In this document: positions 2,023-63,907 of the stretch, piece after piece
How positions within the stretch are numbered: the first letter of the stretch is position 1
Layout: every line of letters begins with the position of its first letter
From: Mytilus californianus
Taxonomy: Eukaryota
DNA: 64,000 nucleotides
Direction of reading: 5' to 3'
Assembly: GCF_021869535.1 (NCBI RefSeq)
Contig: NW_026262593.1
Location: forward strand, 39,246,001-39,310,000
Made by a program: the position numbers and the translations under genes
The notes under the pieces: generated by a model
What the model was told of the DNA's origin: nothing
What the model saw: the letters and a program-made list of their open reading frames with translations, nothing else
Databases searched by the model: none

Positions 2023-2186
2023 ATTCAGATTAGAAGAAATAACAGTTGAGAAGATTTTCCTGTTTGATGTTAAGATCAGTGTATGTTTTGAGACGTATGG
2101 AGACTGTAGATACAAATTTGACATTTTGGACAGTGTAAGGATACCAAAACTACTTTGTTCATGGTCGGATGACTTTGTCATTCCAG
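2023..2186 (+). CDS. exon B1 of Cys-rich repeat gene
   Basis: AG|..|GT, phase 2/1; [54 protein letters not shown]. Confidence 0.85.
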
Positions 2187-5100
2187 GTCAGTAAATACTT
2201 TGAAATATATTTTTATAGCTGTATTTGAGTTAATTTTCTCACAACTCTGTGATAGCCCTTTGTTTGCAGTAGCAAGTATTTTGAGGTTGCCATGTGATCT
2301 CAAAATGACACAAGATTCTAACATATAAAATATGTATAATGTATTATATTATATGTTTGTCCATCTTTAGGCACTTAATATTTCGATGGTCATATTATAC
2401 TGTTTTGTGCATAGTGCTAATTTATATGATTTGGATGACTGCATTTATAACAAAAGCTGAATTTTATTGAAGAATTCACAAGGATGTATGAGTCAAAAGA
2501 TTCTGTTTCTTATATGTCTTTTGTACTGTGAGTTGTTGTCTCATTAACATTTCCTTTATTCACATAGTAAGGATTAGAAATATTGCCCACCATCTTGAGT
2601 TTTAAACAGAAAATTTTTTAGATACATTTGTATTTCAGGATTCAAAATAAGTAATTGGATGAGTAATAAAGGACTACTTAGCTCCTTAACACAGTTACCC
2701 TCAGTCCTTGCATCACAGCTCATGGAAGATCTGAATTTAGCTGGTTATCTGTTGAATCCAGCATGTGACCAGTCGAGTAGTAAATACAAAACTGAAAGTG
2801 GCAATGGATGGAATTCAGGTAAAAAACAATAAACAAAAAGATTAGAATATGCAATATGTATAAATAGAGGAAGAAACCAATCAGAATATCCTGGTTGTGT
2901 CTGTTTTTAAGCAAAAGACAGTTGTCTCAGAAAACCATGGTCAGCTACAATCTGTAAAAAATAGATATAATATAACTTCTGTGTGCACACATTTGAAAGA
3001 TAAGTATATATCAAAGAATGATGTGGCCTTATTATAGACTATCAATGTTTCTTCAAACAGGAGGGAGCTTCTTATCTACAATCTCATCAAGGGCGATAGC
3101 CCTGAAATAAGATGTAGCTAGAAACATCCTCTAGTTGGAAAGACCATTGATGATCTGTTTTTTCCCTATTTTCCCAGGCAACATAAATGACATAGGCTTA
3201 TGTCGTCATACATTCTCTTTTGAATGGACTGAGAAAATCCAATTTTACTAGAGTAGTGTGATGTGGTATATTATCACAAAAAAAGATCAAGGGAAATTTT
3301 GAGAAAAAAGCGATAAATATCAGTATATGTCAATTTTGATATTGCCTTAATATAATGGTCCATCGATGTCAACAAAGGTAGATTTTTTAAAAATTTTATT
3401 TCATTATATATCTGCTTATGTTATAATTTGAATTTCTTAAAAACAAGTCGAAATACTTGCTATGATGTGTTATGAATTGTAAAGTAATGTCTTGAGCATT
3501 ATTTCAACATTATTTTTTTTAGAATGCACATCAGAGGTGAACCTTCCTGACCTACCAGAATCCGTGACATGCTACTTAGATGACACTTGTACTGGGTTAA
3601 GCTGTTGTGCACACATTGGATTTATCAATAGAAATATCAATTTTTTTCTTACAATAGATCCTTGCAGTTATACATTTAACATTGGCATAGAAAAGTATCA
3701 ATATGAATTTTTTCTAATGGATTTTGAATTTGGCATTCAAAAACATTTTCATATTGGACAAGTGATTGAAATAAGGTAAGTGAGCATATGTTATCAATAA
3801 ATAAATGACAAGATTGTGAAAGATAATATTTTTGCCAAATTTCAGTTTTTTTAAATCTAACCAACCTGAATTGTTGGTAAAAACAATTATCCTACAGTTA
3901 AAATTTGACATCAGCAAGTCAGTTGTGTTTGTAGTGCATGTGCAAAAAGAAATGATCGTACCCGCTCTCTAAAACTCGGGTTTATATTACAATCCACTTG
4001 TCCTTCTGTCCATCTTTTCCACCATTCGTTCTTCCAAACATTTCTCCAAAATACTGAACAGAATGACCTCATATATGGACAGCAGCTCAAAAGTAATGAG
4101 CTCATTAGTTGTGATGTGTGAGCAAGGAGTAGGGGTATACTTAGCACGACAACAGACACATTCTTATACATGTACTGACATAAATGTCTTGTGTCTGAAT
4201 TTATAGTACAGTATCAGTTGTTTTCAGATAAAGGTTGTGATACTGATTATTGAGTTGAAAATTATAATTAACACTTAGTGGTAACAAAAAATATGGTTGA
4301 AAAGTTAAGTTGTTAAACTATTCTTTTCTCAACAGAGAATATGAATAACAAGAATCTGTAGTGTGTAATTTTATGCAAACGATAAAATGCAAGTTTATTT
4401 TTAACTTTCATGATATGCTTTCTGAAATAAAATTAAAAAAAAACAGGCTTGACTGTTTAATTGTATTTTTCAGTTACAAAATTACAGACTTCAATGGTTT
4501 ATCAGCATACTATATAGATCTGGATTTTAAAGTTTGCTTTAATGATGGAGGACCTTGTGCTTTTCAAACAACAATATTTTCCAAAACTGAATTACCAAAA
4601 GTACACTGTGGCCTGACAAAGGGGTTTAGGAATACAAGTAAGTGAATATATATTCAGAGGCCAGCAGTTCTATCAGGATAATGTTCTTTTGGTTGATTTT
4701 TTGGCTGAGCTTCCAGTTTCAAATGGTTAACAAATATTTAGAATAAAAAGTGATTGGCTCCTGTGTTTTTACAGTAAGTGTTTATGTTTTTACAATACCA
4801 GAAATTGTTAATTGACTCTTTAAAGGAGTTATTGCCCTTAAATGACAGTTTTTACTTTTTTTGTGTTTTTAACAAAAATTAAAGAAGATAGAAACTTTAA
4901 ACAGAAAAAATTATCAGCAACAAAGAGATTTTTGTCATGAACTATATTTTAATCTACAATGTTCTAGAGTGTCCATTGTTGAAGGTGCACAAAGACATAG
5001 GTGAGAAACACATTCTCTTAAATTGCCAACCTGTTACTGTTGCATTTTTGACATTAATAAAAACTTCACAATAATTTCTGAAATTACAGTATTGTATCAC

Positions 5101-8100
5101 TGAGCCAACTGCATATCCTTTTGTTTCCAGACTGGTCAATATCAGAATGGTACAGTCATATGCAGATAGACACATCAGAAAAATTGTCTACAAATGCAAT
5201 ATTGATGCTAATGGATACACTTGGTATAGCACCTTTTCTGAAGGAGAAACAATGCAGTCGACATGATCCTAGCTCTGTTTTTGCTGCCCAGTACCAGGGT
5301 TGGAGCACAGGTAATACTGAGTTTAATAATGACTTGAATTAATAGGGTGAAATATTTTTAGAAGTTCATTACAATCATTTTAACATTAATTCTATCATAA
5401 AACATGTCATAAATGAAATTATTGCTACATTATTTCATGTGTAACATTATTACATTTTTGGTTGTATTTCACAAATCACGTATCAACTTAGAGCATGTGA
5501 ATGTGAAAAGAAAAGGATTCTTATTGCGAACCCAATGAAAGTTTTCCACAGTGCCATCTCTATCTTGACCAGGTATTTAAACTTTTGCAAGTTCACCTGT
5601 CCTATTGAAAAGATACAATAGCTATTGTTCTCTGTGTAGTTTATTCTCTGAGACCTTTAAATTTCTTCGAAGAGAAATCTATCATTCATTGATTAAATAA
5701 CCTGAGTAAAAAAAATTTCTTATATATAGACAAAAATACTGTTTTTATACTCATTAACTGCATGTGATGATGTAGTTATTCAATATTAATAATGTATTTT
5801 CATTCAGTTTAATATAAACATTGATTCAATCATAAAAATTTGATTTCTGACAAAACTTTCAACATTGTTCTTTTTAAAAAAAAATTTGTTTGACATGAAT
5901 AAGAACTTGAAAATAATGATGTTTCAAATTAAGATCTTCTTAAATGTATTCTATAACTAAACAAAAAAAAATCAAATTTCAATAGGAACATTGATAAAAC
6001 TTTTGTTAGAAATCAACTTTTTATGATTGAATCAATGTTTATATTAAACTGAATGAAAATATATTATTAATATTGAATAAATACATCAGCACACGCAATT
6101 AATGAGTATAAAAAAAGTATTTTTGTCTATATATAAGAATTTTTTTTTACACAGGTAATTTAATCAATGAATGATAGATTTCTCTTAGAAGAAATTTAAA
6201 GGTCCCAGTGAATAAACTACACAGAGAAAAATAGCTATTGTATTCATTCAATAGGACAGGTGAACTTGCAAAATTTTAAATACCTGGTCAAGATAGAGAT
6301 GGCACTGTGGAAAACTTTCATTGGGTTCGCAATAATGTTTAAATGTAGTGACATCTTGAGATTTTTCACTTAGATATTTTTTTTACAGATTGTAGATCAA
6401 CATCCATTTCACTGCCTCATCTTGACACATCTGTTATAACATGTTACTTAGATGATAGTTGTAACAATGTCCAGTGCTGTCTTGATGTGGACTTAATTGA
6501 CAGATCTTTATATTTCTTTGTAAACTTTGATCCCTGCAACTATGTTTTAAAGTTTGGGATTGAGAGATAAGAGATGGATATTTTGCTGAATAGTTATCAC
6601 TGGGGTGAATGGGAAGAAATGGACCTGTATGGAGTACTGAAAATAAAGTAAAGTTCATTCAATAGGACAGGTGAACTTGCAAAATTTTAAATACCTGGTC
6701 AAGATAGAGATGGCACTGTGGAAAACTTTCATTGGGTTCGCAATAATGTTTAAATGTAGTGACATCTTGAGATTTTTCACTTAGATATTTTTTTTACAGA
6801 TTGTAGATCAACATCCATTTCACTGCCTCATCTTGACACATCTGTTATAACATGTTACTTAGATGATAGTTGTAACAATGTCCAGTGCTGTCTTGATGTG
6901 GACTTAATTGACAGATCTTTATATTTCTTTGTAAACTTTGATCCCTGCAACTATGTTTTAAAGTTTGGGATTGAGAGATTAGAGATGGATATTTTGCTGA
7001 ATAGTTATCACTGGGGTGAATGGGAAGAAATGGACCTGTATGGAGTACTGAAAATAAAGTAAAGTTTATTTTCTTTTAATAATTAACTTTTATCTTCTGA
7101 GGTCTTTAATTTAAATGAAATTTGTTGAGTTCAAAAACTAACTTTGGACTAGCTTTAGGCAGTCTCTCTTCTTCTATCAAAGGTTGTGACTTTGATCCAT
7201 ACCAAGGTCTTTCCAAAGCTATAGAATTGTTGTTTTTTTAATTCATCAGTAGCACAAAGCATTAAGAAAAAAGCTGAAGATTGGAGATAAAAAAAAATGT
7301 GTCTAGAAATGCATTTTGATCTGTTGAAATGTCTTTGTTTGAACTGTTACCTAATTTATGTAAAAGTCAAAGACTAACACACAAAGATATAAAATAAACA
7401 ATTACTGACAAGGTTCCGAACTGGGTATATGCACATGAACATGAGTGGTGAACCCATTATTTTTCAATCTCATCCCTTCTCTTTTATTTTTATTATACTT
7501 ATGATTACGTAGTACTTTTGTTCTGTTGCAAAAGACACTGAAACATTTGATAAACCAACAAGCTAGTCCTGTTGTGCTGAAGCATTTGTGGATATTATCC
7601 CTGCTCTAAATGTTATAGTTCTAAAATTGGTAGTTGTTCCTTCTCTGACAGCTAAGCAGGCAGCATGAAGGAGTAGAAGACAGGAGTCAGAATTATGTTC
7701 TTGATAAGAATGTCAAAATAATATAATAATAATAATAAATTCTTTATTTAAAGAGGGTAAACTCAGTTAGTTACAGTTAGTCATGATGTCCTGGTCATGA
7801 ATATTTATCTTATATTTGCTCACTCTAACTTGTAACTTAATACACATATTCATTATGACATGAAATTTTAAATGATATGATGCAAAGTTATGTTTTTCAA
7901 ACAGTCACTGAACATAAAATTTGATCGTGTGTAATATTAATGTTTCTGGTTAAGGTTATTCACGTGTACAGTATGATGATATATACCAAACTACGATTTT
8001 GACCATGAATTCACAATTTACTGGAAAAGGAAATTGATAGTGCGAGCAGGAACTGTTTCATTAGGACACATATTCTTGTTTATCTCATATTTAAATTGCA

Positions 8101-8116
8101 GTCTATATATATTCTA

Positions 8117-8165
<49 letters not shown>

Positions 8166-11100
8166 TCGTCAGTCCGTCAGTCCATCAGTCCTGTTTCTTG
8201 TCATCGCAACTCCTCTCAAACCACACAACAGAATTTCACGAAATCTTTTTAGATAATAAGGACATACTATGTAGTTGTGCATATCGACAGGAAATTACGA
8301 TTCAATTCTTTTTCTAGGAGTTGCGCCCCTTTGAACTTATTTACTTTAATGTACTACTGCAACAGTTTGTCATCGCAACTCCTCTCAAACCACACAACAG
8401 AATTTCATGAAACCTTTTCAGATAATAAGGACATACTACGTAGATGTGCATATCGACAGGAAATTACGATTCAATTTTTTTTCCAGGAGTTACACCCCTT
8501 TGAACTTATTTGCCCAATATACTACTGCAACCTTTTGTCATCGCAACTCCTCTCAAACCACACAACAGAATTTCATGAAACCTTTTCAGATAATAAGGAC
8601 ATACTACGTAGAAGTGCATATCGACAGGAAATTACGATTCAATTTTTTTTCCAGGAGTTACACCCCTTTGAACTTATTTGCCCAATATACTACTGCAACC
8701 TTTTGTCATCGCAACTCCTCTCAAATCACACAACAGAATTTCATGAAACTGTGTAGATAATAAGGACATACTATGTAGATGTGCATATTGACAGGAAATT
8801 ATGATTCAATTTTTTTTTCTGATACAATTTTTTTTTCTTACACTTATTTTATTTCTCCAATGACAATGTGGGGACGTGGGGTATGTGAGCGCGCTCACTA
8901 AGGTTCTTTCATTTATTTTGTAGGTATTTGATAGATGACTTTTATGCGGAACAACAATATGCCATTTCTATGGTCATTGGGTTATGTTGGGAATATAATG
9001 GGCCTTGTCAAGAATTACAGATTCTTGATAGAAGTAGAGTGCCTAAAACATTGTGTAACTGGGATAAAGGATTTAAAATACCAGGTAAAAATCTTTGAAG
9101 AAATATAATACAAAAATATATATTTGTGAATGAATATAGAAAATCTTCTTGTTTGTTAATACCCATTTTAAAGCTTTGATTTTTTTTCTCTCAGGAGAAT
9201 AAATCATAAAAATACAAGATAAAAAAGATAAACAAATTTACCATTTTGTGCCACACTGCAAATTATACCAGTATTTCAGCAAATAGTTACGAAAGTCAAG
9301 AACAAAACATTACAAAAGAATCAGAATACCGTCTAGTTAAAATGAAAGCCTCTTTTTAAAGAGTCAGATTTGCACATAGATGCAAGTTGAACAATACAGA
9401 CTTTTCATGATGAAAATGTAGGCTTAAAAACATTGTGATTTTTATGTGCAACATAATGACTGTGTGCGGCATTTGACCAAACTATGAAGGCATGATGGGG
9501 AGTTCAGGCTCATTGGAGCATCAGGTTCCTTCATTCAAAAAGTAAAACAATAAAACTTGTTGTTTTGCTTAAACATTTTCTTTTAATTAGAGACAGCTTT
9601 TTTAAATGCTTTGTTGACAATAAGATTATAGTCATTTTTTTATGGGGATATACTGGTTTACCTATGTCTGTCCACCCATCCCATGAAGTTTTTGTCCCTT
9701 ATTGTCTCGCCTTGACAGAGTCAAAAAGCGAGACATAGATATGCTGTTTTCGGCGGCGGTGTCAACAATGTATTAGTTTGTGATTAGGTCTAGTTCATGG
9801 TGAACCACTAGTGGTAGGTCAATAATATTTGGTATGCAGTTGTATAAGCATTGGCACATCTCATTACCATGGAGTTTATTTGCCCCCCACCCCCCCTCAG
9901 TCATGGTTTATTGACTTTGAAACTTTGCTTAGTTTACATGTAGTAGTTTGTGATTAGGTCAGTTTATGGGGAACCACTAGTGGTAGGTCAATGATATTTG
10001 GTATGCAATTGTATAAGCATTGGCATATCTCATTTCCATGGAAGTTATTTGGCCCCGCCCCTTCAGTCATGTTCTATTGACTTTAAAACTTTTGCTTACT
10101 TTTCATGTATTAGTTTGTGATTAGGTCAGTTTATGGGGAACCACTAGTGGTAGGTCAATGATATTTGGTATGCAATTGTATAAGCATTGGCATATCTCAT
10201 TTCCATGGAGGTTATTTGGCCCCGCACCTTCAGTCATGTTCAATTGACTTTAAAACTTTTGCTTACTTTTCATGTATTAGTTTGTGATTAGGTCAGTTTA
10301 TGGGGAACCACTAGCGGTAGGTCAATGATATTTGGTATGCAGTTGTATAAGTATTGGCATATCTTATTTCCATGGAGATTATTGGGCGCCGCCCCTTCTG
10401 TCATGGTCTTTGGACTTTGAAACTTTTGCTTAGTTTTCATGTATAAGTTTGTGATTAGGTAGTTCATGGAGAACCACTAGTGGTAGGTCAATGATATTTG
10501 GTATGCAGTTGTATAAGCATCGGCATATCTCATTTCCATGGAGATTATTTGGCCCCACCCTTCAGTCATGGTCTATTGACTTTGAAACTTTTGCTTAGTT
10601 TTCATGTATTAGTTTGAGATTAGGTCAGTTTATGGGGAACCACTAGTGGTAGGTCAATGATATTTGGTATGCAGTTGTATAAACATTGGCATATCTTATT
10701 TCCATTGAGAGTATTTGGCCCTGCCCCTTCAGTCATGGTCTATTGACTTTGAAACTTTTGCTTAGTTTACAAGTTAATGTTTGTGTTTAGGTTTCTTTAA
10801 AGGGAACGACTTATGAAAAGTCAATGGTATTTGGTATGCAGTTGTATTAGCATTGGCACATCTCATTTCCATGGAGATTGTTTAGCCCTGTACCTTTAGT
10901 CATGGTTCATTGACTTTGAATATTTGCATAGCTTACATGTTAAAGTATTGGTATTTTAATTTCAACATTTGCATTATCAAAATAACAAATAGGCGAGACA
11001 TATCTCTGTGTTAACAGTTTATTTTATAGAGAACTACAAATCAGAGCTTCGTGAAATTTCGTATCAAGCTTCACAGGACGATGCTATACTGATTGATGCC

Positions 11101-49645: not shown

Positions 49646-49692
<47 letters not shown>

Positions 49693-55600: not shown

Positions 55601-58600
55601 GTTTCTCGTTTCTCGTTTTTGTCGAGCCTTCGACTTTTGTCGAAAAGGTGAGACATAGCGATCCTACATTCCGTCAGCGTCGGCGGCGTCCACAAATATT
55701 CACTCTGTGGTTAAAGTTTTTGAAATTTTAATAACACTCTCAAACTATCCTAGATTTCTACCAAACTTGGACAGAAGCTTGTTTATGATCATAAGATAAT
55801 ATTCAAAAGTAAATTTTGTAAAAAAAAAATCCATTTTTTCCATATTTTACTTATAAATGGACTTAGTTTTTCTGCCAGTTTACATTACATTCACTCTGTG
55901 GTTAAAGTTTTTGAAATTTTAATAACTTTCTTAAACTATCTTGGATTTGTACCAAACATGGACAGAAGCTTGTTCATGATCAAAAGCTAGTATCTAGAAG
56001 GAAATTTTGTTAAAATCTTGTTCAATTTTTTCCGTATTTTACTTATAAATGGACTTCGTTTTTTCTTCCAGTTAACATTACATACAGTCTGCAGTTTTAA
56101 GTTTTTAAAACATTTTTTAGAATCATAAACTATCCTGGATTTTTACCAAACTTGGACAGAAGCTACTTACAATCAAAAGATAGTATGGAGAGGAATATAT
56201 TTTATTAATTTTTCTCCTTATTTTTGTTGAGCCTGCGATTAACAGCAAAAGTAGGCGAGACACTGGGTTCGGCGGAACCCTTACAAATTTTTTATATAGA
56301 TTAGGCCGTTGGTTTTCCCGTTTGAATGGTTTTTCACTAGTAATTTTTTGGGGCCCTTTATAGCTTACTTTTCGGTGTGAGCCAAGGCTCCGTGTTGAAG
56401 ACCGTACTGTGACCTATAACGGTTTACTTTTATAAATTTTGACTTGGATGGAGAGTTGTCTCATTGGCACTCATACCACATCTTCTTATATCTATTGGAT
56501 ACTTTTTTTTCTATGAAATACAAATTTTTGGTCCTTTTTATTCACCAGTCCTGCAGTTTATTTACTTTTTTTTAATTTATTTTCACCAGCTTTTTGATAT
56601 ATGATCTGGAGAGTGATGGTACTTACTTGGTCAATATGAATGTCAGTATTTGTTTTGAATCTTCCAAGCCTTGTTTGTTTGATCAGATTATCTTCAATAA
56701 TACTAAACTGACGAAAAAACCATGCAAGTGGCAGACAGGATTTAAAAATTCAAGTAGGTTTCTTTGTATTTGTTATTGAACTAATAATCTGTAAAAAAAA
56801 CAGTTACATGTATGTTCTAAATGGATGCTTTTTCCCGTACATTAATAAAGAGAGCATGGGAGAAGAAGCAGCAGCTGCTGGCTTATACTCATGGATCCCA
56901 ACTGCAGCAACTAAGTTTAAGAGAAAATCATAGTTTCTAAAAATACCCTCAGTGGACACAAGTTTTCTTCATTTCTAAGATAGCTGTGCTAAATTTACAT
57001 TTGTGACATAGGATGGGAGCAGTAATTAGACGTTAAAAAAAATGCACCAACCAGTCAAATTTCCTTTCATATAAGTTATAATATGACTCATCTATGCCTT
57101 TTACTAATATTAAATATATCTGCTTAAATTCTACAATTTTTTTCATGTGTTTAATTATTTTGGATGTATTTTGACGTGTAAATCACAGTGAGCTCGAGAA
57201 GTTATTTTTTTTACCTCTTACAGGGTTACAGTTTTTAAAAGTACATTATTACATTGTATGTTGTACATGTATGTACAGATTTGATATAAGTCTAAAATAA
57301 CCCAATTTCTTTATATTTGAAGATTTTTCTTTATCCTCATGGAAGTCATCAGTAGGAATTGAGCCATCACAATCACTCACTGTGGTAGAGATTAGAAAGC
57401 TTGAAGAAATACTAGGAATAGCTCCATTCCTTCTGGACAGTCCTTGTCAGAGATACAGCTGGCCATATGTTCCACCAACCAATGGATGGAGATCAGGTAA
57501 CTATAGAAAAATTATTATCTTTTAACTAGTTTAATTTCTGTAGAGAGCTTTTATTTGTGATGACCTACCTCCATTTGTAAAAAGGCTGTAATTGTCTAAT
57601 GGCTACAAACATTACAGATCAATATACTGTTATTTCCATTAAGAATTACAGAGATGCTGAAAAGCTACATATATGATAGATAGTGTTTCTAAAAACAGAA
57701 AATTTGGATCTAAAAAAAATTTAATTATTACCCAGCTTTATTACACCGTTTTACCTCTGTCTGTCTGTCCATCCATCCGTCAGTCCATCTGTCCGTCAGT
57801 CCAACCATCCGTCCTATTAATATTTTCGTCGCATCTTTCTCAGGAACTACATTACAAAGATTTCTGAAATTTGGTTTCAGGGTTAATATAAGTCAGCTAT
57901 ACTGTGTGATGCCTGTTTACCGAACACTTGTATCATTTTACACATGATAGCGAAGTTGAAAATTTTCGTCACATTTTTCTCAGGAACTACAATACAAGGA
58001 TTTCTGAAATTGGTTTCAGGGTTTATATAAGTCATCTATAGTTTCACTTGTTCTAAATTTTTGCATGGTATTTGTACATATCACCAGCTTGTGTCATATA
58101 TATTCTACCGCATCACTCATTAATATATATTCTACCAGACAGCTGATTATTATGATTTTTATTCACTCACCATAGTCACATTTTCAAACACTAAAATAGA
58201 ATGCTTCCATGCATTTTAAAATTCGAATATTAAACTTTCCAGAGTAAATAAATATATTGTAGTCGATGATCAACAGTTGCTGTTATGAGTTAATGGCAAA
58301 AGCAATGTTTCCAATATATATGGAGGGTTATAGCATGAGACAAATTTAATCGGCTTGTTGTTTATCAGAATTTATCAAGCTAGTCAGAAATAGTTCAAAT
58401 TGCATATAAAATAAGAGACAACAAATTTGGCTTTTTCTTAGTCAAAGGTGGTGTTGATTTTTAAATTATTTCTAATCCAAATCTTTTCAAATAATGTGTT
58501 GGTACATTATATGCATTCTAAAAAAACAACTTATGATGTCTGTAGAATTGACCATTTAATATATTAGTATATATCTTTATGTTTAGAATTTTTTTTATAG

Positions 58601-61600
58601 ATTGTCCACAAGAGATGAGGAATCTACCATCACTCCTGAGTAATATGAACTGTTACATTGATCAGTCCTGTACAGCAGTTCAGTGTTGTATGGATGTCAA
58701 CGAACTTGGAAAGTCTTTAGAGATAGGAATTAAGATTGATCCATGTGACTTCAGGTTGACAGTCAGGATAGAGAAATTAAGCTTTGACGTTACATTGTAT
58801 GACTATGTGTGGGGTAAGTCTGATTGATCCATATAACTTCAGGTTGACAGTCAGGATAGAGAAATTGAGCTTTGACGTTACATTGTATGATTATGTGTGG
58901 GGTAAGTCTGATTGATCCATGTGACTTCAGGTTAACAGTCAGGATAGAGAAATTGAGCTTTGATGTTACATTGTATGATTATGTGTGGGGTAAGTCTGAT
59001 TGATCCATATAACTTCAGGTTGACAGTCAGGATAGAGAAATTGAGCTTTGACGTTACATTGTATGATTATGTGTGGGGTAAGTCTGATTGATCCATGTGA
59101 CTTCAGGTTGACAGTGGGGATAGAGAAATTGAGCTTTGATGTTACATTGTATGACTATCTGTGGGGTAAGTCTGATTGATCCATGTGACTTCAGGTTGAC
59201 AGTGGGGATAGAGAAATTGAGCTTTGATGTTACATTGTATGACTATCTGTGGGGTAAGTCTGATTGATCCATGTGACTTCAGGTTGACAGTCAGGATAGA
59301 GAAATTGAGCTTTGACGTTACATTGTATGATTATGTATGGGGTAAGTCTGATTGATCCATGTGACTTCAGGTTGACAGTGGGGATAGAGAAATTGAGCTT
59401 TGATGTTACATTGTATGACTATCTGTGGGGTAAGTCTGATTGATCCATGTGACTTCAGGTTAACAGTCAGGATAGAGAAATTGAGCTTTGATGTTACATT
59501 GTATTATTATGTATGGGGTAAGTCTGATTGATCCATATAACTTCAGGTTGACAGTCAGGATAGAGAAATTGAGCTTTGATGTTACATTGTATGATTGTGT
59601 GGGGTAAGTCTGATTGATCCATGTGACTTCAGGTTGACAGTCAGGATAGAGAAATTGAGCTTTGATGTTACATTGTATTATTATGTATGGGGTAAGTCTG
59701 ATTGATCCATGTGACTTCAGGTTGACAGTCAGGATAGAGAAATTGAGCTTTGATGTTACATTGTATGATTATGTGTGGGGTAAGTCTGATTGATCCATAT
59801 AACTTCAGGTTGACAGTCAGGATAGAGAAATTGAGCTTTGATGTTACATTGTATGATTGTGTGGGGTAAGTCTGATTGATCCATGTGACTTCAGGTTGAC
59901 AGTGGGGATAGAGAAATTGAGCTTTGATGTTACATTGTATGATTGTGTGGGGTAAGTCTGATTGATCCATATAACTTCAGGTTGACAGTCAGGATAGAGA
60001 AATTGAGCTTTGATGTTACATTGTATGATTATGTGTGGGGTAAGCTTAATTCACAAACATAAAAGTGAAACTGTTTGATTTCATATAGTTTTAAAGATTA
60101 GTGCATTTATTTTTATGTGTCAACTATATTTCACATCCAATATTTTATGGTAATATTCTTCTCAAAGCACAAAAATGTCGGCATTCACCTCAAAAGCTAA
60201 CCAAACCTTTAAACAGACTTATTCGGAAAGGATATAGTTACGATACTGTTGTCAAGTCATTAAGGATTGCATATTTTGGTATTAATATTGATTCACTCAT
60301 AGGGTCTTTGCATTGGAAATAAACACATTTATTCTAAAACCAGTTATTGGCATGATACAGGTTATGTTCTTCTCATATATTTTATGATGGTATGATACTA
60401 AACCCCTTATGGGAGGGATTGTACTTGATTTTCATATGATGAAGACATTATCCTTCAATCAGTTTAATTGAGGTCTGGAGCTGGCATGTCAGTAACTGCT
60501 AGTAGTCCTTTGTTCATTTATGTATCATTGTCATTTTGCTTAGTTTCTTTTGTTACCTATTCTGACATCGGACTTGGACTTCTTTTGAACTGAGTTTTAC
60601 TGTGCGTATTGCTATATGTTTCTTTATTCTACATTGGCTAGAGGTATAGGGGGAGGGTTGAGATCTCACAAAACATGTTTAACCCCGCCTCTTTTTTGCG
60701 CCTGTCCCAAGTCAGGAGCCTCTGGCCTTTGTTAGTCTTGTATGTTTTTTTTTATTTTAGTTCATTTTTATGTTTTGTAGTTTAGTGTGACTTCCATTTT
60801 CACTGAACTAGTACACAATTTTATTTAGGGGCCAGCTGAGGACCACCTCCGGTGCGGGAATTTCTCGCTGCGTTGAAGACCCATTGGTGGCCTTCGGCTG
60901 TTGTCTGCTCTTTGGTCGGGTTGTTGTCTCTTTGACATATTCCCCATTTCCATTCTCTATTTTATTAAGGATGTATTTTTGGCCCACACAAAATCTATAC
61001 CTCTTTTTTGGGATTCCCTGCACGTTGTAAAAGATGGACAAGAAAAAAACCTGTTGAATGCAGGTCACCCTACTAAGGGATCCAAATTAACACTTTAAAA
61101 ATTGTAAGTCAGTCTAGTGTTTGATAGAAATATCTTTTTAATGTGAAATACATTACAGACTTAATCCAATATTTATCTTCCAAGCCAAAATAATACAGCA
61201 AATCGCCCCAATTGAGTTTGATCTAGACATGTTATTTATGATACTAGACGGTAATTTTGTGCATGCTACTTTAAGTAAACAAAATGTATAGCAGGTCTCA
61301 TCGAAACTTAAACCTATAAAGTCTAATCACTTTCAATACCAAAATCGGAAGCTTTAATCATATCAAAATAGACCACTATTACAGGACCTACCTATTGTAT
61401 TTATTGTTTTTGGAAAGTTTGCTATAACAAAAACTTTCCTAAGGCATTGGCCTCAAATCGGAAGTGACAGACTATCTTACTTTAGGATGTGTGTTCCACT
61501 CCTAGATAATGTAGTACTGGCGTTTGACAACTAATTCTAGGAAGATGCTTTTGAAATTTTGAGTTACTTCTATTTTGATTAGCTTACAGTTTGAATTAAA

Positions 61601-62602
61601 ATGTACTGAATGTTCATTGATAATTCAAATAATTCAACTTCATTTTGAAGCTATAGCTATCACAAACACTACTTCGCGGATCTGCGCTGCGCGGTAAGTA
61701 AAATCAATACACATCTACACGAGACAGAAGTTTCTACATTATGCTTTTATCGGTATTCCCCAGACATGCGTGAGATCTATATCAACGGGAGTACTATAAT
61801 CCCGGTTTCAGGGGTTTCCTCCCGTCCTCCGGTTGAAGAGAAAATAAATACAGTGTTTAAAATATTTCATGAATGAACATTTTTCGACGCTTACTACGAT
61901 TTTTACAATGTTATTAAAGACGTAAAAGCCTGAATGTATCGAAAGTATCCCGGTATCTCATCTCGGCCCACAACAAACTCGGACTATAATAAACTCGGCC
62001 TATTACATAATCGGCATCAGAAAATCGGACTATAACAAAATTCGTAATTATACCACTTGCTGTTAAGTCTCCCAAACAAAGTTTGGAGACTTATTGTTTT
62101 GCTCATTCTTATTATTTTTCTTCTTGAGGTCTATTTAGGGTTATTTTGAGTGGCCAACAGAAGGGAGGGATTTACTATAGAACCCTATGGGATTTATTTT
62201 TTTTTAATTTTCAAATGACTATAACTTGAAAACAGTTAGTGATAAACACACACGGTTTTCAGTAATGATCACAGGATCATAAAACAAATCAAATGAAATA
62301 TAGCGGGAGTCCCTCTGGATCAGCCCCACCCCTCCTGTTTGAGAACTTGTAAACGGTTGAGATCCCCACCCCTAAACCATATATATTCTTGTATGGGACA
62401 TTAAAACAAGTCAAATGAAATATAGGGGGAGTCCCTGGGTGTCACCCCCACCCCATCCTGTTTTGGGAACTTGTAAACGGTCAAGATCCCGACCCTGAAA
62501 CCATATATATTCTTGTACGGGACAATAAAACAAATCAAATGAAATAAAAGGTGAGTCCCCTGGGGTCACTCCCACCCCCTTCCTGTTTAAGAACTTGTAA
62601 AC

Positions 62603-62633
<31 letters not shown>

Positions 62634-63907
62634 TTCTTGAATGGGACAATAAAACAGATCAAATGAAATATAGAGGAAGTCCACAGGGGTCAACCCACCC
62701 CCCTTCTTTTTGAAAACTTGTAAACGGTCGAGATCCCCACCCTTAAACCATATATATTCTTGTATGGGACAATAAAACAAATCAAATGAAATAAAAGGCG
62801 ATTCCCCTGGGGTCACTCCCTCTCCCTTCCTGGGAATGACTAATTATGGGAGACTTCGTAACAGCATCATGTTACAATTATTTCTTGTATTAAGTAATTT
62901 TTTTTTAAAGTCAGAAAAAAAAGTTAAACACCCAATCTACACATTTACAACCTATTTGAAATATTACACATCTACCGTTGCAAACTTTCCACAGGTGCTA
63001 TCCAGCACTTTGATTTGTTCAAGTACCAAAAATTCATGTAATATTTCCTACTGGATTTTAAGCAAACTGCAATTAATCGATTATGTATTTATTGTTAATT
63101 TGTTCTGGTTCTGAGCATACCTGAAATATTTTCCACTGGGAATAAAGCAAACAACAATCAATAATATCAAATCAAGTCATTTCTGTCATTGCTTAAGTTT
63201 TTATTTATAGGTTAATTTTGTGTGCTTTGAACTATTCGTCATCTTTTCAACGGGGCCTCGGTGGCCGAGTGGTCTAAGTAGTTACTACTGTAATCACTAG
63301 CCAGTCAACACTGAGGTTGTGAGTTCGAACCCCGCTCGTGCAGGTGCACTTGACTGCAATTTTAATTGACTAGGATTGTCAGTTTTCCTATCAAAGGTCG
63401 TGGTTTTCTCCGGGCACTCCGGCTTCCTCCACCAATAAAAACTGGCCGCCACGAAATAGCCCAAAAGCGGTGCTTAAAAGTGGCGTTAAAACACCAAAAA
63501 TCAAATCATCTTTTCATATTCACATTTTAGAATAAAATAAAATGCAGCGTTTTTGTACATCAAATGTCTGGATGGTTGATTTTTTTTAAATGTAAATCAA
63601 ATACTGCATGTGAGTTTGTGAAAAAAAGAACCAAAACTGACGTTTCGACACAAATAAGGCATAACTAAGTGGTCATTACTTCGTAATTTTTAATGTGAGG
63701 TGACAATAAGAAGTTATTTTGTAATAATAGTAATATCTCAACTTTCTTTAAGTGAAATTTGTAGTATTTTTTGCCTGGGCCATTTTAAGCCCTTAGTGAA
63801 CCTCCTCCTTTGTGAATAAATCCTTTTTAATTTGTACAAACCATTTTCATTTTTATTTTTTTAGGATCGCAGAAAGTTTTAGATCTGTATGGTGTTATGC
63901 AGATATC
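2023..63907 (+). CDS. Partial giant multi-exon gene encoding tandem ~195-aa Cys-rich modules (45 exons, ~2550 aa in window; start and stop lie outside the window); probably secreted/extracellular
   Basis: Recurring exon types A (C..C..C..CC..DPC..IEK..[WYF]G), B (I.DL..VC..C..LPK..C.W..F) and C (FSL..W..LG...FL..C..GW) occur in fixed order. All have AG/GT boundaries with consistent phases (C/A=1, A/B=2, B/C=1). Each complete module is a multiple of 3 nt (564-603) and no junction creates a stop. Many N-x-S/T sequons. Confidence 0.9.
2639..2818 (+). CDS. exon C1
   Basis: phase 1/1; [59 protein letters not shown]. Confidence 0.85.
3523..3775 (+). CDS. exon A2
   Basis: phase 1/2; [83 protein letters not shown]. 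Confidence 0.9.
4474..4637 (+). CDS. exon B2
   Basis: [54 protein letters not shown]. Confidence 0.9.
5131..5310 (+). CDS. exon C2
   Basis: [59 protein letters not shown]. Confidence 0.9.
5524..6332. mobile_element. ~810-bp foldback MITE, TA TSD (Tc1/mariner-type signature)
   Basis: TA|TTGCGAACCCAATGAAAG ... CTTTCATTGGGTTCGCAA|TA, inverted arms ~350 bp. Confidence 0.85.
6389..6647 (+). pseudogene. duplicated pseudo-exon A3' with premature stop
   Basis: Copy of exon 6800-7058 with intact splice sites, but TAA at 6568-6570 where the downstream copy has TTA (6979-6981). Confidence 0.8.
6800..7058 (+). CDS. exon A3 (intact copy)
   Basis: [85 protein letters not shown]. Confidence 0.88.
8118..8909 (+). 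mobile_element. Helentron-type non-autonomous element (HINE/DINE-1-like) family A with 168-bp tandem array
   Basis: 5' subTIR ATACCCCACG within a hairpin, GTCC/GTCA microsatellite, monomers at 8200/8369/8537/8705, 3' subTIR CGTGGGGTAT plus palindrome GTGAGCGCGCTCAC, T-rich flanks. Confidence 0.85.
8924..9084 (+). CDS. exon B3
   Basis: [53 protein letters not shown]. Confidence 0.88.
9699..11020 (+). mobile_element. HINE with ~7 x 167-bp tandem array, nested in an older HINE (~9630-9698 plus 11020-11355)
   Basis: subTIR TGTCTCGCC / GGCGAGACA; GGC microsatellite; period 167 (9944, 10111, 10278). Confidence 0.8.
11446..11610 (+). CDS. exon C3
   Basis: [54 protein letters not shown]. Confidence 0.88.
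12393..12654 (+). CDS. exon A4
   Basis: [86 protein letters not shown]. Confidence 0.9.
13515..13678 (+). CDS. exon B4
   Basis: [54 protein letters not shown]. Confidence 0.9.
13698..13886. mobile_element. PIF/Harbinger-type MITE
   Basis: TAA|GGGCTATTCCATTAAAAT..GGGAGGGTAGGAAGG ... CCTTCCTACCCTCCC..ATTTTAATGGAAAAGCCC|TAA. Confidence 0.75.
14157..14333 (+). CDS. exon C4
   Basis: [58 protein letters not shown]. Confidence 0.9.
14418..14552 (+). mobile_element. short HINE
   Basis: ATGCCCC..GGGGCAT hairpin, pyrimidine microsatellite, 3' GGGGCAT..GTGTC..GACAC; related copy at 30639-30766. Confidence 0.65.
14699..15686. mobile_element. second copy of the same foldback MITE family, with a different internal segment at ~14800-15000
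   Basis: TA|CTGTGACTTGAC ... GTCAAGTCACAG|TA; similar to 34779-35492 and 38986-39230. Confidence 0.8.
15803..16055 (+). CDS. exon A5
   Basis: [83 protein letters not shown]. Confidence 0.9.
17275..17438 (+). CDS. exon B5
   Basis: [54 protein letters not shown]. Confidence 0.9.
18256..18402 (+). CDS. exon C5
   Basis: [48 protein letters not shown]. Confidence 0.87.
18961..19342. repeat. compound micro/minisatellite of TTCAACA / TTTTCAACATTCG words
   Basis: Direct inspection; ends in the palindrome TTCAACAATGTTGAA. Confidence 0.85.
19763..20018 (+). CDS. exon A6
   Basis: [84 protein letters not shown]. Confidence 0.9.
22068..22237 (+). CDS. exon B6
   Basis: [56 protein letters not shown]. 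Confidence 0.88.
22256..22571 (+). mobile_element. degenerate HINE
   Basis: TTATACCC start; 3' AGGGTAT plus GTGAG..CTCAC hairpin. Confidence 0.55.
22971..23135 (+). CDS. exon C6
   Basis: [54 protein letters not shown]. Confidence 0.88.
23412..23667 (+). CDS. exon A7
   Basis: [84 protein letters not shown]. Confidence 0.9.
24688..26178 (+). mobile_element. HINE with 147-bp tandem array
   Basis: 5' hairpin TGTCGAGC..GCTCGACA, GGC repeat, monomers at 25170/25317/25464/25611, 3' GGCGAGACA..CTCTTGTT. Confidence 0.8.
26519..26682 (+). CDS. exon B7
   Basis: [54 protein letters not shown]. Confidence 0.88.
27109..27276 (+). CDS. exon C7
   Basis: [55 protein letters not shown]. Confidence 0.9.
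28008..28594 (+). mobile_element. HINE with ~161-bp repeats
   Basis: subTIR AGTCCCCTA / TAGGGGACT, CTGT microsatellite, 3' hairpin GTATTGC..GCAATAC. Confidence 0.8.
28610..28822 (+). CDS. exon A8a
   Basis: phase 1/1; [70 protein letters not shown]. Confidence 0.88.
29129..29171 (+). CDS. 43-nt exon A8b
   Basis: phase 1/2; [14 protein letters not shown]; restores the A-to-B frame. Confidence 0.8.
29871..30034 (+). CDS. exon B8
   Basis: [54 protein letters not shown]. Confidence 0.88.
30159..30450 (+). mobile_element. HINE
   Basis: ATGCCCC..GGGGCAT, GTCC microsatellite, 3' GGCATCCGTGTACTATGGACACATTCTTGT. Confidence 0.7.
30639..30766 (+). mobile_element. short HINE
   Basis: Same family as 14418-14552. 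Confidence 0.65.
31072..31799 (-). mobile_element. older copy of the same SINE family, split by HINE 31137-31633
   Basis: Reverse complement of 31634-31799 matches the SINE head and 31072-31136 matches the tail; another tail fragment at ~30780-30865. Confidence 0.7.
31137..31633 (+). mobile_element. HINE inserted into a SINE
   Basis: ATACGCC / GGGCGTAT subTIR, CTGT microsatellite, 3' hairpin TGCGC..GCGCA. Confidence 0.75.
31847..32002 (+). CDS. exon C8
   Basis: [51 protein letters not shown]. Confidence 0.85.
32398..32650 (+). CDS. exon A9
   Basis: [83 protein letters not shown]. Confidence 0.9.
33190..33353 (+). CDS. exon B9
   Basis: [54 protein letters not shown]. Confidence 0.88.
33369..34137 (+). 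mobile_element. HINE family A copy 2 (5' hairpin partly deleted)
   Basis: Same termini and monomers as 8118-8909. Confidence 0.85.
34432..34587 (+). CDS. exon C9
   Basis: [51 protein letters not shown]; lacks the GW motif, so the donor position is less certain. Confidence 0.75.
35490..35797 (-). repeat. terminal direct repeat B2 (308 bp)
   Basis: Identical by eye to 36351-36658 (offset 861). Confidence 0.9.
36351..36658 (-). repeat. internal direct repeat B1 (308 bp)
   Basis: Begins ~50 bp after the YR stop; identical to 35490-35797. Confidence 0.9.
36711..37808 (-). CDS. tyrosine recombinase (YR) of the DIRS/Ngaro element
   Basis: [10 protein letters not shown] (catalytic R), [13 protein letters not shown] (HxxR), [11 protein letters not shown] (W..Y); overlaps RT-RH by ~150 bp; true start codon uncertain. 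Confidence 0.93.
   Translation of the reverse strand: MIYLSVNNFCVIMFDRHCIYRILLGTCLVMPFVFFYLGSLVSREVRSLYSIVANFRCHTYAESTKKTYLNYFKSYAEFCRRLNITLVPLSPMNLARYVAYLSSRLQFNSITNYLSIVRLLHLESGVASPIDSFFMESVLKGAKRVLGAAIHRKLPITPKILNEIFTLLSVSSSKDLCFWAACLVAFFSFLRKSNLFAPSISAFDPLRHFTREEIHFHSDGVCLKVRKTKTIQFSERILEIPLPRVKNSHLCPSKALLLNFKQVPAVSAPSPVFLYLVRGKVTPLTYTAFVKMLKQNLSRLGYDSSKYSGHSFRRGGASFALECGVPADLIQSQGDWKSNAYKSYLDPSFAHRQEVMNKFAVALGK
37660..38985 (-). CDS. DIRS-group reverse transcriptase-RNase H (N-terminally truncated)
   Basis: [32 protein letters not shown]; RNase H motifs [24 protein letters not shown]. The ORF-track N-terminus [11 protein letters not shown] comes from the flanking MITE. Confidence 0.93.
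   Translation of the reverse strand, partial: NFIHDCSRPIGFAVNDFAGEFDKQKFQTVDDACKLVSKNFYMSKVDLKAAYRSVKISEQSREVTGLTWTFPDGHDYTFIDKKLPFGSKLAPGIFHRLSQAIRRMMSRRGFTIVAYLDDFFICEKTKKRCAQALAILIALLRKLGFCISWSKVTDPCQQIVFLGVEIDSTTLETRLPIAKLHDLKSELAEFLLRKRASKKQLQSLAGKLNWASAVVRGGRVFLRRIINGIMRLKLDWHKLRLTGEILQDIKWWHNFISTFNGKSILLSKVPITSVATDACKSGGGGVYQNDWFYVNWAEDHPFALKLHINELEAFSVALAVKRWAPYWRGQRIIVHCDNAVTVSCINKGTSKNAILMSFLRELFWLSATYNFHLIAKHVPGKTNILADCISRMHDLPFCEQFLRDYVRPPLYLQDLVRHMSSNALRFLLFRLTGIEGGEITI
39434..39643 (+). CDS. exon A10a
   Basis: [69 protein letters not shown]. Confidence 0.88.
39964..40006 (+). CDS. 43-nt exon A10b
   Basis: [14 protein letters not shown], phase 1/2. Confidence 0.8.
40505..40668 (+). 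CDS. exon B10
   Basis: [54 protein letters not shown]. Confidence 0.88.
40828..41004 (+). CDS. exon C10
   Basis: [58 protein letters not shown]. Confidence 0.88.
41489..41701 (+). CDS. exon A11a
   Basis: [70 protein letters not shown]. Confidence 0.87.
42635..42677 (+). CDS. 43-nt exon A11b
   Basis: [14 protein letters not shown], phase 1/2. Confidence 0.75.
42866..43032 (+). CDS. exon B11
   Basis: [55 protein letters not shown]. Confidence 0.88.
43742..44015. mobile_element. TTAA-TSD MITE (Kolobok-like purine termini), nested in the hAT element
   Basis: TTAA|GGTGGTACCTAACAC ... GTGTTGGGTACCACC|TTAA. Confidence 0.78.
44325..44662 (+). mobile_element. HINE nested in the hAT element
   Basis: ATACCCC..GGGGGTAT hairpin, GTCC microsatellite, 3' GAGC..GCTC..TTTCACTTGTT; degenerate relative at ~57727-58052. 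Confidence 0.75.
45046..45219 (+). CDS. exon C11
   Basis: [57 protein letters not shown]. Confidence 0.9.
45950..46162 (+). CDS. exon A12a
   Basis: [70 protein letters not shown]. Confidence 0.9.
46361..46403 (+). CDS. 43-nt exon A12b
   Basis: [14 protein letters not shown], phase 1/2. Confidence 0.82.
47171..47337 (+). CDS. exon B12
   Basis: [55 protein letters not shown]. Confidence 0.88.
48129..48299 (+). CDS. exon C12
   Basis: [56 protein letters not shown]. Confidence 0.9.
48601..48810 (+). CDS. exon A13a
   Basis: [69 protein letters not shown]. Confidence 0.9.
49011..49149. repeat. near-perfect long palindrome
   Basis: AAATAACACA..GAGAGGGTGATAGAGCAGATTGTTACCCC..CATTGTCAAC / GTTGACAATG..GGGGTAACAATCTGCTCTATCACCCTCTC..TGTGTTATTT. 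Confidence 0.85.
49649..50427 (+). mobile_element. HINE family A copy 3
   Basis: Same termini and monomers; interrupts a short ~30-bp tandem repeat (AGGAATGATTACACTAG..). Confidence 0.85.
52022..52064 (+). CDS. 43-nt exon A13b
   Basis: [14 protein letters not shown], phase 1/2. Confidence 0.8.
52440..52698 (+). mobile_element. degenerate tRNA-type SINE (different family)
   Basis: Decayed A/B boxes, TAAAGACT..TAATGTGTC..GACATG core, CCAT tail. Confidence 0.45.
52701..53690 (+). pseudogene. 5'-truncated Penelope-like retroelement RT/thumb (domain order consistent with the Naiad/Chlamys clade)
   Basis: [52 protein letters not shown]; nonsense TAA at 53508-53510, frame continues to TAA 53688-53690; in-frame TGA at 52728-52730; no GIY-YIG after the thumb. 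Confidence 0.85.
53826..53883 (+). promoter_or_regulatory. type II SECIS-like hairpin in the Penelope-like element 3' UTR
   Basis: GACT..ATGAC-GTTAAAATAC-T-AAA-TCC(CTA)GGA-T-GTGTTTTAGT-TGAT..AGTC; helix II pairs 10/10 with G.U pairs allowed. Confidence 0.75.
54002..55033 (+). mobile_element. HINE inserted in the Penelope-like 3' region
   Basis: subTIR GCTCACCT / AGGTGAGC, CGTC microsatellite, 3' hairpin AGGCTC..GAGCCT. Confidence 0.8.
55617..56292 (+). mobile_element. HINE inserted in a retroelement-derived 3' repeat
   Basis: 5' TGTCGAGCC hairpin, GGC repeat, ~190-bp internal repeats, 3' GGCGAGACA plus GGGTTC..GAACCC; fragment also at ~19430-19680. Confidence 0.8.
56590..56753 (+). CDS. exon B13
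   Basis: [54 protein letters not shown]. Confidence 0.88.
57323..57496 (+). CDS. exon C13
   Basis: [57 protein letters not shown]. Confidence 0.9.
58601..58813 (+). CDS. exon A14a
   Basis: [70 protein letters not shown]; only the first donor (58814) keeps the frame open. Confidence 0.88.
58735..60044 (+). repeat. exon-derived minisatellite, 15 units of 88 bp (three of 86 bp)
   Basis: Unit starts 58735, 58823, 58911, 58999, 59087, 59175, 59263, 59351, 59439, 59527, 59613, 59701, 59789, 59875, 59961; each unit ends with GGG|GTAAG. Confidence 0.95.
60122..60966 (+). mobile_element. 3' fragment of a second, diverged Penelope-like family
   Basis: [38 protein letters not shown] aligns with the end of the 52701-53690 frame; long 3' tail; 5' boundary approximate. 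Confidence 0.75.
60374..60438 (+). promoter_or_regulatory. second type II SECIS-like hairpin
   Basis: CATAT..ATGAT-GGTATGATAC-T-AAA-CCCC(TTAT)GGG-AG-GGATTGTACT-TGAT..ATATG; helix II pairs 9/10. Confidence 0.7.
62063..62888 (+). mobile_element. HINE with ~123-bp tandem array
   Basis: subTIR AAGTCTCCC / GGGAGACTT, monomers at 62281/62403/62527/62651/62774, 3' hairpin GTAACA..TGTTAC. Confidence 0.8.
63250..63505 (+). mobile_element. full-length tRNA-derived SINE with V-domain-like core
   Basis: A box TGGCCGAGTGG (63262-63272), B box GTTCGAACCC (63323-63332), core GGTTTTCTCCGGGCACTCCGGCTTCCTCC, AAATC tail, 11-bp TSD TCATCTTTTCA (63239-63249 / 63506-63516). Confidence 0.85.
63865..63907 (+). CDS. 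43-nt exon A14b
   Basis: [14 protein letters not shown], long polypyrimidine acceptor, GTAAGT donor, phase 1/2. Confidence 0.8.

Follow-up and report, generated by a model that had tools for sequence, protein, structure and literature searches.

We conclude that a 64,000-nucleotide stretch of the Mytilus californianus genome, referred to here as the window, probably holds the middle and distal part of a very large gene for a secreted glycoprotein, which would belong to an undescribed and ancient branch of the large lipid transfer proteins. The window encodes a tandem array of a ∼200-residue, 10-cysteine domain that is absent from Pfam and from PDB sequences, and the same domain follows a Vitellogenin_N head in full-length-like gene models from different phyla.

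The window corresponds to approximately positions 39,246,001 to 39,310,000 of JAKFGE010000011.1 (M. californianus, GCA_021869535.1); it is AT-rich (30 to 36% GC) and has no N. In simple motif scans, the three classes of coding motif, A, B, and C, were confined to the plus strand. Iterated profile searches of every stretch without a stop in the six frames, seeded with one exon per class, recovered 13 intact A, 13 B, and 13 C exons with E values of 1e-10 to 1e-41, all on the plus strand and in the strict order B-C-A. The additional A-profile matches were to a stop-bearing duplicate of exon A3 and to copies of an 88-bp repeat. These searches found no A, B, or C exons on the minus strand and, at relaxed thresholds, no further ones in the window. 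A single phase rule applies at homologous splice positions: phase 1 from C to A, phase 2 from A to B, and phase 1 from B to C. In modules 8 and 10 to 14, the A exon stops 43 nt early, in phase 1, and six mini exons of 43 nt with the expected peptide pattern, each in the next intron, finish these modules.

Joined together, the 45 exons (2023 to 63907, plus strand) form a sequence of 7,653 nt whose 2,550 codons include no stop, whereas the alternative frames contain 254 and 208 stops. All introns are GT..AG, and exon sizes range from 43 to 262 nt. The original prediction had proposed 45 exons in one stop-free frame of ∼2550 amino acids, and our independent rebuild gave the same figures and the same end coordinates; the 45-exon observation is thus confirmed as real, and chance is excluded. 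It had also proposed that the gene runs off both edges, and the exon ends agree: exon B1 begins with a phase-2 acceptor and has no start codon, so the gene extends upstream of the window, and mini exon a14 ends in a GT donor, so the gene extends downstream as well. The 4.8 kb that precede the window contain no A exon, and none lies within 6.8 kb upstream of exon B1. As for the predicted minimum of 14 modules, 14 are present, but just 12 are complete, because the window edges cut the outermost modules, B1-C1 and A14-a14, which are thus partial.

The first exons of the model, B1 (2023 to 2186), C1 (2639 to 2818), A2 in its long form (3523 to 3775), B2 (4474 to 4637), and C2 (5131 to 5310), rest on the profile and the splice model. 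RefSeq protein XP_052083604.1 includes C2 and, among the exons placed by the splice model, A3 (6800 to 7058, the second copy of a tandem duplication), B3 (8924 to 9084), C3 (11446 to 11610), A4 (12393 to 12654), B4 (13515 to 13678), C4 (14157 to 14333), A5 (15803 to 16055), and B5 (17275 to 17438). Exons C5 (18256 to 18402), A6 (19763 to 20018), B6 (22068 to 22237), and C6 (22971 to 23135) come from the splice model. So do A7 (23412 to 23667), B7 (26519 to 26682), and C7 (27109 to 27276), which are also present in XP_052083605.1. In module 8, the splice model gives a short A8 (28610 to 28822), B8 (29871 to 30034), and C8 (31847 to 32002), and mini exon a8 (29129 to 29171) is supported by M. 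galloprovincialis protein VDI23778.1, in which 36 of 37 residues are identical and the alignment is ungapped over both junctions. A9 (32398 to 32650), B9 (33190 to 33353), and C9 (34432 to 34587) follow, each from the splice model and each with a few RNA reads.

From module 10 on, the splice model supplies A10 in its short form (39434 to 39643), mini exon a10 (39964 to 40006), B10 (40505 to 40668), C10 (40828 to 41004), A11 (41489 to 41701), B11 (42866 to 43032), C11 (45046 to 45219), A12 (45950 to 46162), B12 (47171 to 47337), C12 (48129 to 48299), A13 (48601 to 48810), mini exon a13 (52022 to 52064), B13 (56590 to 56753), C13 (57323 to 57496), and A14 (58601 to 58813). Mini exon a11 (42635 to 42677) is matched without gaps, at 31 to 32 of 37 residues, in three Mytilus gene models, and a12 (46361 to 46403) is matched without gaps at 26 of 29 residues in VDI23778.1. 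The last exon in the window is mini exon a14 (63865 to 63907).

The predicted protein has a mass of 292 kDa, an acidic pI of 4.6, and 129 cysteines (5%). The motifs and the 10 cysteines per unit are as originally described, and the marked divergence between modules is borne out by pairwise identities of 24 to 35%. No membrane-like stretch was found in the 2,550-residue model, which, together with the acidic pI, the cysteine content, and the signal-peptide-like leaders of relatives, supports the proposal of a very large secreted protein. N-x-S/T sequons, which had been called frequent, number 31; the enrichment is mild, with 22.5 ± 4.3 in shuffled sequences.

At 6243 to 7070, exon A3 occurs twice, within a 411-bp sequence duplicated in tandem (2.0 copies at 99% identity), and the upstream copy of the exon (∼6388 to 6648) has an in-frame stop after ...GIER. 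Use of the upstream acceptor would yield a truncated transcript; the duplication could be an assembly or allelic variant. At 58734 to 60044, adjoining exon A14, 15 copies of an 88-bp minisatellite (94% matches) repeat the last ∼80 nt of this exon together with its GTAAGT donor and so offer 15 possible 5′ splice sites in a row, only some of which would keep the frame, as 88 is not divisible by 3. A satellite unit of ∼168 bp occurs in three introns, with 3.7 copies in each (8198 to 8817, 33427 to 34045, and 49737 to 50353), and tandem arrays with 167-, 147-, and 124-bp periods are likewise intronic (9765 to 10940, 25090 to 26073, and 62279 to 62832). Two C exons, C5 and C9, have a shortened Cys...GW loop; C9, whose donor is CGA|GTAGGT, lacks GW altogether. 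Between the C cysteine and the first A cysteine of the unit that follows, the loop has ∼9 to 20 residues. On the minus strand, ∼0.5 kb before the window begins, a called product of 254 amino acids (flank coordinates 4299 to 5063) has a weak zf-CCHC match; it is probably what remains of a retroelement gag gene within the intron that precedes exon B1.

Independent gene models cover much of the array. RefSeq splits the gene into fragments that are built from the modeled exons (loci LOC127720904 and LOC127720905): XP_052083604.1 (599 amino acids) equals residues 264 to 855 of our model at 99% identity, and XP_052083605.1 equals residues 1083 to 1290 at 100%. In M. galloprovincialis, residues 2094 to 4242 of VDI23778.1 (P0154; 4,242 amino acids) match model residues 1 to 2107 at 77% identity, and the alignment is ungapped over mini exons a8, a11 (32 of 37 residues identical), and a12. 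RNA data came from sequencing runs selected because they contain 13 to 20% of the window's words. Their signal comes from intronic transposon and satellite sequence, with depth in the thousands at 30000 to 31800 and 33400 to 34200; the ∼168-bp satellite and the intronic repeats at 30000 to 31800 draw very high RNA and contig depth, which makes the runs appear to cover the locus. Exon depth in these runs is ∼1 to 5×, at few exons, and no splice joints are listed. Exons A9, B9, and C9 have strand-consistent RNA-seq depth of ∼0.3 to 1.5×, and module 8 has none. The exon-covering contigs are ∼92% identical to the exons, which points to an origin in a sister species or a paralogue. The chromosome that includes the window also encodes a paralogue, XP_052081234.1.

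The repeated unit, which the original prediction left unnamed, has stayed so. With hmmscan, no recurring Pfam family was found in 94 modules searched singly, in 10 single-module proteins, or in several multi-module proteins, and the module profile had no match among PDB sequences at E ≤ 10; nor was there a convincing fold match. Single exons likewise had no Pfam match, as expected because each is part of a domain. The register of the unit, on the other hand, differs from the A-B-C module first proposed. AlphaFold2 predictions in the register A-B-C, from the 94-module alignment, had a pLDDT of 83.3 and a pTM of 0.61, and in them the linker between B and C was disordered and the tail badly ordered, whereas the register C-A-B, from a 91-sequence alignment, gave a pLDDT of 88.8 and a pTM of 0.83, with the C tail ordered. 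On this evidence, the structural domain is C-A-B, bounded by the phase-1 introns between B and C. The predicted fold is a two-helix hairpin, encoded by exon C, followed by an antiparallel beta part of 9 to 10 strands, encoded by A and B.

The 10 cysteines of each domain would form five disulfides. We surveyed cysteine loss in A-B pairs of the longer proteins of the family (with 297 A and 237 B elements identified) and found that cysteines vanish pairwise: A-C2 with A-C4 in seven cases, B-C1 with B-C2 in six, and A-C6 with B-C3 in five, at least three of which were counted as independent. These losses imply three of the five disulfides, A-C2/A-C4, A-C6/B-C3, and B-C1/B-C2. Module 8 of the window (28610 to 30034) is one of the A-C6/B-C3 cases: its sixth A cysteine is gone (DPC to DND) and so is its third B cysteine (C to R), and the fact that unionid mussels and a different Mytilus locus show the same paired loss supports the A-C6/B-C3 bond. 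For a possible bond between the single C-exon cysteine and the first A cysteine, few losses were informative, and several of them resemble gene-model artifacts.

Foldseek searches with the predicted domain returned no solved structure at E ≤ 1e-3. An exhaustive structural aligner returned one chain at Z ≥ 5, the N-terminal domain of FAIM (FAIM-NTD), followed by the C-terminal domain of FAIM (2kw1) at Z 3.7, in both cases against the A+B beta part. FAIM-NTD (3mx7) is the best solved analogue, with Z scores of 5.6 to 6.0 that are below the level the tool treats as meaningful and possibly reflect just a common arrangement; the alignment covers 87 to 88 of 90 residues at an rmsd of 3.5 to 3.8, with a TM score of 0.52 by target and 6 to 9% identity. 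FAIM differs from the module in that it lacks a helical hairpin; it is cytosolic and free of disulfides. Mucins and VWF, abalone VERL, and SEA-repeat proteins are likewise built of tandem, disulfide-stabilized, glycosylated units of ∼150 to 200 amino acids encoded by symmetric-phase exons, but the module has no Pfam match to their domains, and VWD and ZP structures reach Z scores of just 2.5 to 4.7.

The module belongs to a large family. Among 1.84 billion proteins, the exon-A profile matched 808 representative clusters at E ≤ 1e-3 and 536 at 1e-10. Its taxa span bivalves and gastropods (Mytilus spp., Potamilus, Sinanodonta, in which members reach 6,862 amino acids, Mya, Mercenaria, and Patella), a flatworm (Macrostomum), and amphioxus (Branchiostoma). 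The named members are all "uncharacterized" or "hypothetical," and we found no published description of the family, the module, or the architecture; the family thus seems to be undescribed, its sequences public only as fragmented, unnamed predictions.

Full-length-like models are available from different phyla: amphioxus XP_078664147.1 (P0153; 3,594 amino acids) and Potamilus KAK3589057.1 (P0004; 3,134 amino acids). Both start with a signal-like leader, continue with Vitellogenin_N and HEAT-like helices, a weak Peptidase_M23-like region, and SAP motifs, and end in the A-B-C array. From the leader to the first module, the two proteins are colinear over 1,375 amino acids at 32% identity. Vitellogenin_N scores 44.3 bits in P0153, 34 bits in P0004, and 26 bits in M. 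edulis P0162 (the Pfam cutoff is 24), and homologues from oyster, snail, and lancelet carry a precomputed Vitellogenin_N (PF01347) assignment. The M. edulis protein has Vitellogenin_N, the M23-like region, and SAP, and M. coruscus P0163 has the same type of head. The original suspicion that such repeats occur in vitellogenin- or apolipoprotein-like proteins is thus supported by the Vitellogenin_N domain that precedes the modules in the amphioxus and Potamilus proteins. The full-length relatives, which carry from 10 to more than 30 copies of the ∼200-residue domain, share Vitellogenin_N, a signal-like leader, HEAT-like helices, and giant secreted size with vitellogenin, apolipophorin, apoB, and MTP. 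Unlike the described lipid transfer proteins, they have the M23-like region, the SAP-like motifs, and the cysteine-rich domain array, and neither the lipid-cavity beta-sheet domains DUF1943 and DUF1081 nor the C-terminal vWD of vitellogenin and apolipophorin had a Pfam match in P0153, P0004, P0154, P0162, or P0164. The amphioxus head had no match among PDB sequences.

In the heads, the weak Peptidase_M23 (LytM-type) match lies at residues 1048 to 1150 of P0004, ∼1040 to 1140 of P0153, and 186 to 286 of P0159. The Potamilus sequence has H-x-x-x-D and H-x-H, whereas in amphioxus the first His is missing and in the M. californianus model this stretch contains no H-x-H; the region may be a degenerate zinc-peptidase domain within the lipoprotein-like head. 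Two SAP-like motifs (KPC..P....D..L..EL..RGL.T.GSR..I.RL....C) occur at residues 1136 to 1193 and 1384 to 1434 of P0164, with equivalents in 20 proteins; they occupy exactly the place that C elements would take, directly ahead of the first and the second A element. SAP is normally a nuclear DNA-binding motif, and here it is found in a secreted protein. We considered whether exon C is itself a degenerate SAP motif (PF02037) and rejected the idea: the hhalign probability was 2%, none of the 94 modules had a SAP match, and the two agree in position and helix-loop-helix form only.

The head that would belong to the window lies outside it. LOC127720901 of M. californianus, with a gene span of 191 kb on the same 74.79-Mb chromosome as the window, encodes P0164 (1,794 amino acids), which is colinear with the P0004 and P0153 heads at 31 to 43% identity; the Vitellogenin_N profile had no scoring match on this N-terminally truncated model. 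Over its C-terminal 390 residues, P0164 matches the beginning of VDI23778.1 at 87 to 90%. VDI23778.1 itself continues without a break from the SAP motif, past ∼10 earlier modules, to the region that corresponds to the window; this protein is a gene prediction, and predictors can merge tandem genes. The consecutive locus numbers LOC127720901, LOC127720904, and LOC127720905 hint at adjacency. From the chain that leads from P0164 through VDI23778.1 to the window model, we infer a single gene whose coding sequence probably exceeds 5,800 codons, and on these sequence matches the array and the LOC127720901 head would share one transcript.

A different reading of the same loci is that the window array is a stand-alone, headless tandem paralogue that encodes a secreted matrix, mucus, or adhesive repeat protein. 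We think this unlikely. RefSeq does have separate loci, LOC127720904 and LOC127720905, in the window, the databases contain many module-only entries (e.g., P0001, P0002, and P0003), and the module is found at other loci of the M. californianus genome. However, the module-only entries both begin and end in the middle of a module and are therefore fragments, which counts against a stand-alone gene. So do the phase-2 start of exon B1, its lack of a start codon, and the lack of an A exon within 6.8 kb upstream, and the M. galloprovincialis model is continuous from the SAP motif into the window-matching part. Much less probable still is that the array is a decaying, nonfunctional relic such as a pseudogene. 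The very low RNA depth, the exon duplicate with a stop, the minisatellite that multiplies a splice donor, and the fact that RefSeq built fragments only could all be read in this way. Against it stand 2,550 stop-free codons over 45 exons in a genome of 31% GC, splice sites that are all intact, cysteines that are conserved despite the low identity between modules, and an orthologue that is 77% identical. One very large secreted protein with a lipid-transfer head is our preferred reading of the locus.

Two further proposals concern the module itself. It may be a very divergent, tandemly amplified form of DUF4773 (PF15998), a family of ∼190-amino-acid, uncharacterized, secreted proteins of arthropods and molluscs; we regard this as possible, if doubtful. 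By language-model features, no named family is closer than DUF4773 (scores of 0.78 to 0.81, with 165 to 172 shared features); it recurs in both shape searches (TM scores of 0.38 to 0.42 over 106 to 108 residues), and its size is like that of the module. With feature scores under 0.9 and TM scores under 0.5, the tools grade these matches as leads only. Yet hmmscan against Pfam, including PF15998, found no DUF4773 match in the 94 modules at E ≤ 10 and none at E ≤ 0.1 in the 10 single-module or the multi-module proteins, and DUF4773 proteins have a single domain, whereas the module forms tandem arrays. A very distant relationship between the two is possible. The other proposal, to which we give little credence, is that each module is a unit that binds lipid or another small ligand, with a helix-turn-helix lid on an up-and-down beta sheet like that of FABP/calycin proteins, so that the array would be a modular counterpart of the apoB beta-belt and coat or carry lipid, not serve as a passive stalk. 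The protein would be in a lipid-transfer superfamily; two helices followed by 9 to 10 antiparallel strands resemble the FABP topology; the top Foldseek rows are mostly CRABP/FABP, lipocalin, nitrobindin, and OlmO; and the lipid-binding sheets of MTP align over 121 residues. These matches are nonsignificant, however (E values of at least 0.03, TM scores of 0.16 to 0.27, and Z ≤ 5.4, with an rmsd of 8 to 12 Å for FABP and calycin barrels), and the best-fitting solved structure, FAIM-NTD, is not a barrel. Five disulfides per unit together with glycosylation sites suggest discrete globular domains.

By analogy, we picture the full protein, with its signal peptide, Vitellogenin_N head, M23-like region, two SAP-like motifs, and domain array, as follows. 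After secretion, the array may form a long, rigidified extracellular stalk, a string of beads stapled by disulfides, which could display the lipid-loading head or bind ligands multivalently. Such a protein might act as a lipoprotein-like carrier in hemolymph, yolk, or mucus, or as a clotting or recognition scaffold, roles that are known from other large lipid transfer proteins. A broader idea, which we offer as speculation and consider rather unlikely, is that these proteins represent an ancient bilaterian class of lipoprotein-like molecules, found in spiralians and amphioxus, in which dozens of new-fold, five-disulfide domains that hold lipid or hydrophobic cargo or bind microbes replace the amphipathic belt behind a vitellogenin-type head, with DUF4773 proteins as their single-domain relatives. 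Such an array would be a modular way to build very large extracellular lipid or recognition particles.

If our preferred reading of the window as part of one giant lipid-transfer-like gene is correct, the ∼200-residue, 10-cysteine domain, composed of a hairpin and a beta part, would be a new domain family without a counterpart in Pfam or the PDB, abundant in molluscs and also found in amphioxus and a flatworm. Public annotation would then break up a single gene, probably for more than 5,800 residues, among entries labeled "uncharacterized" as if they were unrelated. The combination of head and array would be a new architecture in the large lipid transfer protein superfamily and would bear on the diversification of vitellogenin-, apolipophorin-, and apoB-type carriers before the protostome-deuterostome split.
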